Assembly (NCBI GenBank): GCA_038496445.1 | Contig: JALMLS010000310.1 | Location: 310,001 to 374,000 of the forward strand | DNA: 64,000 nt | Origin: Trichosphaerium sp. ATCC 40318 | Taxonomy: Eukaryota > Protista > Tubulinea | Direction: 5' to 3' | Shown: piece by piece, positions 830-4,072 of the stretch | How positions within the stretch are numbered: position 1 is the stretch's first letter | Layout: each line of letters begins with the position of its first letter | Made by a program: the position numbers and the translations under genes | The notes under the pieces: generated by a model | Database searches by the model: none | Seen by the model: only the letters and a program-made list of their open reading frames with translations | What the model was told of the DNA's origin: nothing

Positions 830-3800
830 ATGCACAGCACTTCTATCGCTCTTGTTGTTGTACTAGTAGTACTACCACTTTATATCGAGCGCGCTCAAGC
901 TGCTTCAAACGCAAATCCAATAGATGTTCACTCTTGTGATGTCTACAGGGACTGGGGATGTATAGTAGAGGACTGGCAGCTTGTTACAATAAAAAATGAT
1001 GCCGGCGAAATAACCAAACAATACCGAAATAGACGCAACTGCCGTGCTAAACCAGAGCCACCCATGTCTTGGGTTACCAGAACGCGCCGAACAGATTTGT
1101 ACCGTATTTACGCAGGTTCTTCGATAGACAAACAACAACAATCTTATGTGCCTGGAAGCGTAGTGGAAGTTACTCTCTTGGTAACAAAGTACAAGGCAAA
1201 GGTGCGAACTTTGAATTAATTACTACGCAGAACTTCGTTTTTGACTTGATTTATAGTTCCGTGGCCTTCTTATGTACGCTGAGGATGTTAATAAGACACA
1301 TGTCGGAGAATGGAAGTTGTCTAGTGACGCTCCAGGTTCGACAAAATCGGATTTGAAAACCTTTACTAGCAATCATTGTTAAACGTTTAATTAGATTTCT
1401 GGCAGTTACCTTGGGGCTCCAGTTCTTCTTGTAAGCAAAGCGTTATGCATAATAGCGCAGAAATCAAAGCGCTTGAAACAAAATTCACTTTTATTGCTCC
1501 ACCTAAAGGAACTGGAACAATATGGTTCCGTGCTTTAGTAAAGAGCGGTGATGCAAATACTGGAGACTTTTGGTGGCCAAATCCAACCAAAGATTTCTCG
1601 TTAACTGAGTCAAGTGAATCTCTTCAACCTCAAACTTGGGTACAAACTAAGGCACGTGTCAAATTTAAGTGGGAAAAAAAATGGAGTTTCTAATGTAACA
1701 GTGTAGGTTGGACAATCATGTACTGATAAGTGTGCTGAAGATAATCTAGTTTGTGATGTTGTTGAGTTAGAACGTATGAATAGTATCTCACGATTACAAG
1801 AAGAGTTCACAAGCTTCATGTGTAAAAAACCTTTTTTGAGCAACTGCTTGTCAACAGGTGTCTCTCAGGGTTCTAACGGCTTATGTTATTACGATGACAG
1901 TCGTTGCATAGACCAAGGACGCTCTTCAGACAGAGTCAGTTGCGATGCTTCAAGCGACAACGATGTAAACGGGTATGAGTTTAAACAAACACATTTCCTT
2001 GGTTGGAAGCGGCTAACTGGTTTGTAGAATGCGATTCTGTAAATGTGTCGAACCAAAAGCTACACTTGCTCCAATAGAGCCTGAAGAAACCGAACTCCCT
2101 CCAACACCAAAACCAATCCCATTTTCATTCACGCAAGCTTCTCCTGCCTCTAAGCAAACATCATCTTTGTTGCTCCTTTGTTTATGCATCTTTGGTGCTA
2201 AATCGTTCAACGGCGGACATAATACACCAGCTGTCTTTGCTGTGTTCATCTTGATGGCGTTGATGGCGTTCCCAGTCCCTACACAAGGCCATAACTGGAT
2301 GAAGAGTTTAAGTCGACGCTCCTTTGCCAGTACTGAAGCTCCTTGCCCTGCAAAGTTAGATGACACGCCTCATGCCCAAGTCGGACCTGATCAAAAGTTC
2401 GAGCTTGAGTGGACAACCGGACACAAAGGATTCTCATATTTCGCGATAGTACATGAAAAACACGCCGATAAATTGCGCTTGCACGATTCACGAGGAAAGT
2501 TGTTTAAAAAATACTTTGCAGATGCACCAAAAGGAGCTATTTCAACATTAGATGTTTACCATAGACAATACCGAGCTAGGAAGGTTATAGACGGCGAAAA
2601 TGCTCTATATTCTGGTGAGATTATGGAAGGTTCAAGCAAGTTTTTACCTAGACCTGAAGCGTTCGGTACTTGGAGATCAGATGCTAAACTGTTTGGTTAC
2701 AAAGATAATGTACATCCAGATAACTATGCGGAGTATGAGAACCCAAATATGACTTGGATCGAAGCTGTCTTCAGAGCCGATAAAATAATAGACAGGCCTG
2801 CAGATGCTGACGTAGTAAAATTGAAGATACCTGGGAGAGCTGGCACAGGAAATTACATTGTTCAATGGGTCTGGGGAGGATACAGAGATTGTACCGATGT
2901 TTCTTATGTTGATTACCAAGTAGAAAATATCTATGGTACACCATCAGAAGAGCTACACTTCACGTACGTTTTTTCAAGACTTGCAATGACTTTTTTCCCT
3001 AGTATTTTTTCCTCTGCTAACTTTCTTAATTAGCCGTGTTGATCACTGCTACTTTCCAAGAATATACCATGTTCCGGTATGTACACGTGTCTATAATGAT
3101 ATATCCTTTTGTGCACAGTCTTGTCCTGTTGGTAATACTTGCGCTGGTTTTGTTGTAGCACCTCTTCATGTTGATTCTCCATACTTTGAAGAAGCCAATT
3201 TGATACCAGACAAGTGTCTACAGAAGTTCAACTTTTCTAAACCACTCGATGCACCTGCTGAAGAAATATTCGTTTGTTATTCCGTAGTGTCTCATCAACC
3301 ATCAACAACACGCGGAGTTATCCAGAGAGTACAACCTGGTGACCCAGCATACCATTCAACGTGTTTTATGAAAGGAACAGGAAGAACATTCTCAGGATTT
3401 GTTGCACCAACAGAAAACAAAGTTGACTGGCGTCACGGGGATAAGTGTATCGATTGTTATACATTAAAGAAGAACACACCTTCGAAGAGTCTTCCAAAAT
3501 GGCCTCTCACGGATGATTGTCGTAACTGTGATCTAGAGCCATCACTTGAACCGCTTCCAGTTGATAGAACAATGACAAAGACAGATAACAAAACTGTTTG
3601 TGACGGATATAGAGGATACATGAGGAGCGCAAACAGCCATAACTGTAGTACTAAGGAGGAAGCCGCTAAAACATGCGTTAAGACTATAAAGAAGCTTGGT
3701 GGTCATGGCAGAGGAGCTACAATGTACAGAAAGGAGTGTGCGCTCCTAGTAAGCATGGATCCGGAATGTACAGATATAATTATGACTCAAATTGAAGGTA

Positions 3801-3955
3801 CACAAAAGTCTTTAACTTATCTTGGAGAACCTGTTATGCATTGTCACTGTATGACAAATAAGGAATGTTGTCAAGGATGTACTAAGCGCGGAAACAACAA
3901 GGCTGAGATTTGGAAACTTGATCCAGTTGGTGATCACGATGTTGGTATTCAATAA
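830..3955 (+). CDS. Secreted multi-domain protein: signal peptide, Reeler-like domain, Cys-rich module, internal hydrophobic/signal-like segments, His-initiated LPMO-like domain, Cys-rich C-terminus (about 6 exons)
   Basis: N-terminal signal peptide (MHSTSIALVVVLVV...AQA). Reeler-like motifs YVPG..V.V.L, FRGLLMYA and FTFIAPPKGTGTIWFRALVK. ORF fragments join through short introns, e.g. DVNG|MRFCKC across the intron ending at 2027. Internal TQG-HNWM and YIVQWVWGGYRDCTDV. Confidence 0.75.
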
Positions 3956-4072
3956 ACTAAACGCAAGTTCCATTAGACAATTGTCTAACGTTTTTACAAC
4001 TATTTATTGTTCTCCACAGTACGGGAGCGCTGTTTTTATATGCTTCAGTTGGTATGCGTGTATGCCTTTATC

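Follow-up and report, generated by a model that had tools for sequence, protein, structure and literature searches.

Can a single gene encode a membrane-held surface protein and also a secreted protein whose essential first residue is exposed only by an internal cut? This question is raised by a locus in Trichosphaerium sp. ATCC 40318 (assembly GCA_038496445.1, contig JALMLS010000310.1), within a window of 64,000 nucleotides covering positions 310,001 to 374,000 of the forward strand. The original prediction was that one transcript here yields a membrane-tethered Reeler protein plus a separately released copper enzyme, through signal-peptidase cleavage directly in front of a histidine. The sequence features on which this prediction rests are confirmed. 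The interpretation is supported at each step tested, though only by comparative and structural inference. Many protist relatives share this layout, and no paper describing it was found.

Gene structure

The gene lies on the + strand (830-3955) and consists of six exons, giving 939 codons by arithmetic on the coordinates. Exon 1 (830-1201) opens with the ATG at 830 and encodes a signal peptide of 24 residues (830-901), read from the sequence as a hydrophobic core, IALVVVLVVLPL, followed by AQA, and then the start of the Reeler-type module. Its donor site is AAG|GTGCGA and its peptide matches 13 relatives at collinear positions. Exon 2 (1257-1335) encodes a core strand of the Reeler module (FRGLLMYAED...) and matches 21 relatives at collinear positions, with tblastn alignments of homologues breaking at its borders. 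Exon 3 (1395-1639) encodes the Reeler core and matches 77 of 150 relatives, with a best E of 2.5e-22. Scanned singly, the exons of the window give no Pfam hit to this domain, and the Reeler assignment is transitive. Of 56 homologous N-terminal modules, 33 hit PF02014 (best E 1.3e-11); that of the relative P0001 (P0001:18-225), which exon 3 matches at E 2.5e-22, scores 33.6 bits against a cut-off of 21, and a second relative, P0032, scores 34.9 bits.

Exon 4 (1707-1972) encodes a Cys-rich module that matches 42 relatives (best E 4e-17), with a weak sub-threshold hit to the C-terminal end of PF15024. The following intron (1973-2027) is GT..AG, 55 nt in length, and keeps the frame (GG|A = Gly, then ATG at 2029), with homologue alignments resuming downstream in the expected frame. 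Exon 5 (2028-2963) lies in an open reading frame without a stop (2029-3033) and holds the end of the Cys-rich module, a Pro/Thr/Ser linker, two hydrophobic stretches and the whole LPMO-like domain. A second GT..AG intron (2964-3033, 70 nt) is consistent in phase, and homologue alignments resume at about 3026-3035. Exon 6 (3034-3955) encodes a Cys-rich C-terminal region of 306 residues and the stop codon, without a hydrophobic tail. It matches 54 relatives (best E 1e-37) and gives no Pfam hit, with only a weak PAN/apple-like lead. An AATAAA at 3951-3956 overlaps the stop. No paralogues were found inside the window.

That these modules form one open reading frame is almost certain. All six exons map collinearly onto intron-free relatives, and complete intron-free precursors exist on transcript-like contigs, one of which (L001) has an in-frame stop upstream of its ATG. 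Two of these are Trinity transcripts labelled Flabellula baltica and Rhizamoeba saxonica. It could be argued that two adjacent genes have been wrongly read as one, or that an internal promoter or start gives the His-domain protein its own N-terminal signal peptide, as for mouse Igsf1 isoform 4, an isoform documented as starting in an intron (PMC9162367). The junction does look like a GPI signal followed directly by a complete signal peptide, as a fusion of two genes would leave it, and stand-alone genes exist. However, there is no stop between the modules in the single exon, and the only in-frame Met residues near the junction lie inside the hydrophobic core and would leave a signal of about 12 residues. 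Across the family, Met is not enriched in front of the internal signal (34% against 29% expected), so there is no conserved separate start. Independent production of two proteins is thus considered very unlikely.

The predicted internal signal peptide

The first hydrophobic stretch, SLLLLCLCIFGA, is located at 2164-2199 (precursor residues about 365-378) and could be either a stop-transfer helix or a GPI-signal-like tail. It is followed by a short polar loop, KSFNGGHNTP (2200-2229), and by a second, signal-peptide-like stretch, AVFAVFILMALMAFPVPTQG, at 2230-2289, which ends in PTQG with Thr at -3 and Gly at -1. The next codon (2290-2292) encodes the His of the HNWM motif, which is His409 of the precursor and His1 of the predicted mature C-terminal product. 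In the family, 84 internal-type rows, the window's included, have a first hydrophobic stretch with a median of 14 residues, preceded by an S/A/G-rich stretch, and the gap to the second has a median of 7 residues. By a hydropathy-based segmentation (median gap 6), the loop in the 73 members with two hydrophobic segments is rich in K/R, with 123 K+R against 24 D+E. At 11-14 residues, the first stretch is short for a membrane helix.

An exhaustive search found 369 relatives. Among the best 150, 127 align from the His, and all 127 have His at this position (motif HNW). The His is internal in 88 of these, always with A/G/S at -1 and A/V/T/S/C/G at -3, and 72 of the 88 carry the Reeler module upstream. 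Among the 39 members called as N-terminal, -1 is A/G/S in 36 (P in 2, T in 1) and every -3 is an allowed residue. Four stand-alone relatives are verified to have an in-frame stop upstream of their ATG and an ordinary N-terminal signal peptide ending at the same His. A crude rule, requiring A/G/S at -1, A/V/T/S/C/G at -3 and a hydrophobic 9-mer within 25 residues upstream, is satisfied at 82 of the 88 internal His positions, but at only 0.27% of all other positions and 0.17% of other His residues in the same proteins. This is far more than chance.

These observations make cleavage at this site very likely, although the site is predicted from the -3/-1 rule and from conservation alone. The alternative is that the chain is not cut and the two hydrophobic stretches form a permanent membrane hairpin joining two lumenal or extracellular halves, with the His as an internal conserved residue. 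Closely spaced hydrophobic pairs often form stable hairpins, and the basic loop follows the positive-inside rule, which a stable hairpin also predicts. Nonetheless, an uncleaved helix end has no reason to conserve small residues at -1 and -3, as is seen in 88/88 internal members. In addition, the same His is the first mature residue in the verified stand-alone members, and homology begins exactly at the His in 127 of 150 alignments. The uncleaved hairpin therefore appears improbable.

A tree of the domain showed stand-alone and internal types interleaved (16 changes). This is not read as frequent fusion and fission, because at least one “stand-alone” entry (the relative P0125) is a truncated gene call on a contig with one open 1149-codon frame.

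The predicted LPMO-like domain

The domain that follows the predicted cleavage site (2290-2961) comprises 224 residues. A model from the single sequence was uninformative (pLDDT 33), but with the family alignment AlphaFold2 gives a pLDDT of 93.7 and a pTM of 0.91. The best fold matches are of LPMO type: X325 with Z 8.0 and AA15 with Z 7.7, followed by AA9, AA10, AA11, AA13 and AA16 with Z 6.0-6.6. Each of these matches starts at the chain's mature N-terminus, with 12-24% identity for all but one LPMO-type row (8gul, 8%), against mostly 3-8% for other sandwiches. The top hit of a Foldseek search is AA11, although the best E is only 4e-3. Structural neighbours in the atlas (TM 0.52) include clusters in which some members carry LPMO_10. 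The evidence leans towards an LPMO-type beta-sandwich, but Z scores of 6-8 are middling and lie in the range that unrelated beta-sandwiches can reach.

His1 is invariant in the family alignment, as are R9 and Y75. His45 (2422-2424), within WTTGHKG (2410-2430), is invariant in 81 sequences and is a candidate second histidine of a brace. Towards the C-terminus, a strand-pair motif, YIVQWVWGGYRDCTDV (2854-2901), contains Tyr198 (2881-2883) and Cys201 (2890-2892), and a Y198-x-x-C201-x-D203-V motif is conserved. W195, G197, Y198, D200 and D203 are each conserved in at least 94%, with Y198 at 95%, whereas C201 (81%) is co-conserved with C19 (84%, 2344-2346). H28 and H95 are conserved in about 91%, but the window copy has Arg at domain position 95.

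Searches by sequence gave no link to a described family. No Pfam, NCBIfam or PDB match was found for the domain, a profile gave no PDB hit, and only 1 of 81 members hits AA9, weakly (E 0.0057); no profile-profile comparison with a real LPMO family was possible, a tblastn search of plasmids for an AA10 sequence having given only chance hits. A word-based protein search found nothing with the single domain and only 3 short relatives with the profile, most relatives being far longer than its length window.

It remains possible, though unlikely, that the precursor is cleaved as described but releases a beta-sandwich binding module, or an enzyme of another kind, which needs a free N-terminal His for a different reason. 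The lack of any sequence-level link to an LPMO family favours this view, as do Z scores typical of models without true relatives. TTHA1873 and pilin or adhesin sandwiches score nearly as high, and the helical insert follows His45 instead of preceding the second His, an arrangement that may differ from that of AA10. On the other hand, an invariant residue-1 His directly after a signal-peptidase site is the hallmark of His-brace proteins (PMC7924993, PMC5823890). LPMO-type chains also dominate the top of two independent structure searches, with about twice the identity of the other hits, and a second invariant His and the conserved Tyr-x-x-Cys-x-Asp-Val motif are present. A copper histidine brace is regarded as likely, but it is only inferred.

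Proposed processing of the precursor

The explanation favoured, with moderate confidence, is that the gene makes one secretory precursor of 939 residues. It is inferred that the N-terminal signal peptide starts translocation, and the Reeler and Cys-rich modules enter the ER lumen. The first hydrophobic stretch would stop transfer, leaving the short basic loop on the cytosolic side, and the second would re-insert as an internal signal peptide. Signal peptidase would then cut after Gly408 (...PTQG|HNWM). This would result in two proteins: a Reeler protein held in the membrane, and a soluble protein of 531 residues that starts with the invariant His of the predicted LPMO-like domain and continues into a Cys-rich region. 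The Reeler half may be held by the hairpin or after conversion to a GPI anchor. The S/A/G-rich sequence before the first stretch (S 20%, A 14%, G 8%) may reflect a GPI signal, although the linker composition alone could give this pattern, and an internally placed GPI signal can work (PMC2288913).

The free amino group of His1, together with His45, would form a copper histidine brace, and the protein could act as an LPMO-type oxidase or as an X325/Bim1-type copper binder. It could further be speculated, although this is doubtful, that the fusion is a dedicated two-component system. Reeler domains may accompany DOMON and cytochrome b561 modules in ferric reductases, and the Reeler half would then be the membrane-bound redox or copper-delivery partner of the LPMO-like half. 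Production of both from one chain would guarantee 1:1 co-delivery to the cell surface, a new logic for activating a copper oxidase conserved across many protist lineages.

Comparison with known systems

The closest structural match is the X325 protein LaX325 (PDB 6ibh), with 124 residues aligned at an rmsd of 3.2 from residue 1 of both. In X325 proteins, including Bim1 of Cryptococcus, His1 is exposed by signal-peptide removal and the fold is a small beta-sandwich. X325 has a His brace but no known polysaccharide activity, and is used for copper uptake (PMC7924993). The domain described here has no sequence match, is larger (224 against about 150 residues), has the conserved Tyr-x-x-Cys-x-Asp-Val motif, and occurs in protists, not fungi. 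Its His1 lies in mid-precursor in most members.

The second-best match is the AA15 LPMO TdAA15A (PDB 5msz), with 118 residues aligned, an rmsd of 2.7 and 19% identity. The brace in AA15 is formed by His1, a second His and an axial Tyr (His1/His91/Tyr184, PMC5823890), and in the present family the second His comes much earlier in the chain. No activity is known for this family. All described LPMOs, and every described histidine-brace protein, obtain His1 from an ordinary N-terminal signal peptide, whereas here the His sits about 400 residues into a precursor in most members of a large, unclassified protist family. If the inference holds, a cellular polyprotein cut by signal peptidase is the normal route to an active copper site. 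This would define a candidate new LPMO-like family in marine protists, with possible roles in breaking down chitin or algal walls, or in copper uptake. It would also mean that annotation pipelines which look for His1 only after N-terminal signals, or which miscall the internal Met as a start (as for P0125), will miss or split such proteins.

The layout suggests a functional pairing of Reeler (PF02014) and LPMO-like domains, and no paper holding both “Reeler” and “histidine brace” was found. In the viral glycoprotein polyproteins of flavivirus, hepacivirus and bunyavirus, stop-transfer plus internal signal sequences are cut by host signal peptidase (for bunyavirus, see the review PMC7926653). 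The present case is a cellular gene with introns, and no relatives were found in viral contigs with the one pattern scanned.

The cellular precedent is mammalian IGSF1, which is cut at an internal signal sequence by signal peptidase (PMC9162367). In IGSF1, and by inference here, one mRNA encodes two lumenal or extracellular halves separated by hydrophobic segments, and IGSF1 probably arose by joining a gene to one that kept its own signal peptide. The authors of that study state that they know of no other cellular case, and the present family would add a widespread second example. In IGSF1 the two halves are paralogous Ig arrays and the new N-terminus has no known chemical role. Here, the cut would create a catalytic or metal-binding residue, and the layout is that of a large, ancient family and not of a single gene.

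Gene Structure and the Junction Exon

The + strand from 830 to 3955 reads as one six-exon gene, with exons at 830-1201, 1257-1335, 1395-1639, 1707-1972, 2028-2963 and 3034-3955. All introns are GT..AG and range from 55 to 70 nt in length. The exon lengths sum to 2820 nt, which corresponds to 939 codons plus a stop, and an AATAAA sequence overlaps the stop codon at 3951-3956. The composition of the first 4 kb (about 39-41% G+C) and the intron size fit the published draft genome of the marine amoeba Trichosphaerium, for which a G+C content of 37.7% and a mean intron of 75 nt are reported (PMC10521059). All searches were performed exon by exon, with the residue numbers of the precursor being derived from the coordinates.

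The original prediction described one open exon in which a linker and two hydrophobic stretches are directly followed by a His, and each of these elements was confirmed. Exon 5 is open from 2028 to 2963 and encodes the end of a Cys-rich module and a Pro/Thr/Ser linker. These are followed by a hydrophobic stretch at 2164-2199 (residues 365-378), the loop KSFNGGHNTP, and a second hydrophobic stretch at 2230-2289 (residues 387-404) that ends in PTQG. The His follows at 2290-2292 (HNWM) and is residue 409 of the precursor. The second His (WTTGHKG) is located at 2422-2424, and the motif YIVQWVWGGYRDCTDV at 2854-2901.

Relatives and Conservation of the Junction

A word-based search with the 224-residue domain found nothing. 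In contrast, an exhaustive search found 369 proteins at E <= 1e-3 and 169 at E <= 1e-10, with a best identity of 45%. Of the 150 best hits, 127 align from query residue 1 and all 127 have His there, almost always as HNW. In 88 of these the His is internal (positions 56-921, median about 371), whereas in 39 it lies within 45 residues of the called start.

At the 88 internal sites, position -1 is Ala in 72, Gly in 10 and Ser in 6, while position -3 is always A, V, T, S, C or G. Two hydrophobic runs, with medians of 14 and 15 residues, are seen in 84 internal-type rows, that of the window included. The runs are separated by a gap with a median of 7 residues. By a hydropathy-based segmentation (median 6), this loop holds 123 Lys+Arg against 24 Asp+Glu. 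A crude signal-peptide rule is met at 82 of the 88 internal sites, but at only 0.27% of other positions and 0.17% of other His residues in the same proteins. Met is not enriched where an independent signal peptide would have to start (34% against 29% expected).

The possibility that two genes have been read as one is countered by the collinearity of the exons. The peptides of exons 1, 2, 3, 4 and 6 all match the same relatives in collinear order, and tblastn of six full-length relatives onto the window breaks at the proposed exon borders. Seventy-two of the 88 internal-type relatives carry the exon-3 module upstream of the His, while none of the 39 called as N-terminal does. Several relatives are single intron-free ORFs on transcript-like contigs. 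Among these database proteins, P0001 fills a 2994-nt contig and has an in-frame stop upstream of its ATG, P0003 is a Trinity transcript labelled Flabellula baltica, and P0008 is one labelled Rhizamoeba saxonica. A further relative, P0026, comes from a transcriptome labelled Euplotes focardii, although a prey or contaminant origin cannot be excluded for that label.

The stand-alone type is real, but it is over-counted. The relatives P0018, P0019, P0033 and P0082 each have an in-frame stop codon upstream of their ATG, followed by a 15-21-residue signal peptide ending exactly at HNW. The 799-aa protein P0125 also appears to be a stand-alone protein consisting of a signal peptide plus HNW, but it is a truncated gene call. 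Its contig (JGI 3300013895, L005:2-3449) has a single open frame of 1149 codons with its own N-terminal signal, the Reeler part, the hairpin and then the His. Counts of stand-alone members taken from public gene calls are therefore inflated. Such miscalls may partly account for the interleaving of the two types on a tree of the domain (16 changes), and no conclusion is drawn about repeated fusion or fission.

The N-Terminal and Cys-Rich Modules

The exons of the window give no Pfam hit when scanned singly. However, 33 of 56 homologous N-terminal modules match Reeler PF02014, with a best E of 1.3e-11, and the relative P0032 matches as a whole protein. Exon 3 of the window matches these proteins at E values down to 2.5e-22, and the Reeler label therefore holds by transitive homology. 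In an alignment of the Reeler-type modules of this family (A2; window 1395-1639), there is a nearly invariant Cys and a His six residues later (C127 and H133 in A2 numbering; CKQSVMH in the window), and also K139. This could be a ligand-binding or metal-binding site of the partner half.

The Cys-rich module between the Reeler domain and the linker (exon 4, 1707-1972) weakly resembles the extreme C-terminal part of glycosyltransferase family 18 (PF15024). The window scores E 0.034 and the relative P0005 (residues 213-298) scores E 4.5e-4, with both being below the Pfam cut-off. The second Cys-rich region, of 306 residues (exon 6, 3034-3952), would travel with the LPMO-like domain and is conserved in 54 of 150 relatives. 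It has no Pfam match, and an Atlas feature search gives only a weak lead to PAN/apple-type modules (scores 0.87-0.90 with low shared-feature counts).

The Candidate Histidine-Brace Domain

In an alignment of 81 sequences of the domain (A1), the residues H1, R9, H45 and Y75 are invariant. N2, W3, P18, H28, Q30, Q35, G44, D144, Y149, D174, G187, W195, G197, Y198, D200, D203 and G216 are each conserved in at least 90%. C19 and C201 are co-conserved (84% and 81%), as expected for a disulfide. The window copy differs from the family at two well-conserved positions, with Arg at domain position 95 (2572-2574), where 91% of the family has His, and Thr at position 155 (2752-2754), where 88% have Pro. 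All other highly conserved positions are kept.

Structure prediction from the single sequence gave a pLDDT of 33, whereas prediction with A1 gave a pLDDT of 93.7 and a pTM of 0.91. Foldseek ranks AA11 LPMOs first, but weakly (E 4e-3). A Foldseek-independent search of 48,161 chains ranks LaX325 first (Z 8.0, 124 residues, rmsd 3.2) and the AA15 LPMO second (Z 7.7, 118 residues, rmsd 2.7), followed by AA13, AA10, AA9, AA11 and AA16 at Z 6.0-6.6. In each LPMO-type row but one (8gul), the alignment begins at model residue 1 and at the mature N-terminal residue of the chain. Identity is 12-24% in the LPMO-type rows except 8gul (8%), against mostly 3-8% for the pilin, macroglobulin and other sandwiches in the list. 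An Atlas shape search gives a TM of 0.52 to a haptophyte cluster in which 19% of members carry LPMO_10, and the feature search pointed the same way.

Nonetheless, these Z scores are in a range that can arise from a common arrangement. No Pfam LPMO model matches, with only 1 weak AA9 hit in 81 members, and a profile search of PDB sequences finds nothing. The domain is therefore referred to as LPMO-like, or as a candidate histidine-brace domain, and not as a member of any AA family. As to its function, an LPMO-type oxidase and an X325/Bim1-type copper-handling protein (PMC7924993) fit equally well.

Inferred Processing and Comparison with Known Systems

The inferred mechanism begins with the N-terminal signal peptide (830-901), which starts translocation. 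The first hydrophobic stretch would then halt it, with the basic loop remaining cytosolic, and the second stretch would re-insert. Signal peptidase is predicted, from the sequence alone, to cut after Gly408. The resulting C-terminal product would be 531 residues long, comprising the LPMO-like domain and the 306-residue Cys-rich region. It has no hydrophobic tail and would be secreted with His as residue 1.

The Reeler half may have one of several fates. The first stretch is short (median 14 residues) and is preceded by S/A/G-rich sequence, so the junction looks like a GPI signal followed by a complete signal peptide. An internally placed GPI signal is known to work (PMC2288913). A hairpin anchor, a GPI anchor, or trimming by signal peptide peptidase are all possible.

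Full-text literature searches returned no paper in which an LPMO or histidine brace was combined with an internal signal peptide, a polyprotein, signal peptidase or a Reeler domain. The one cellular case of such processing found in the literature is IGSF1, whose authors state that they know of no other (PMC9162367). The mechanism inferred here follows the logic of IGSF1, which is also that of viral glycoprotein polyproteins.
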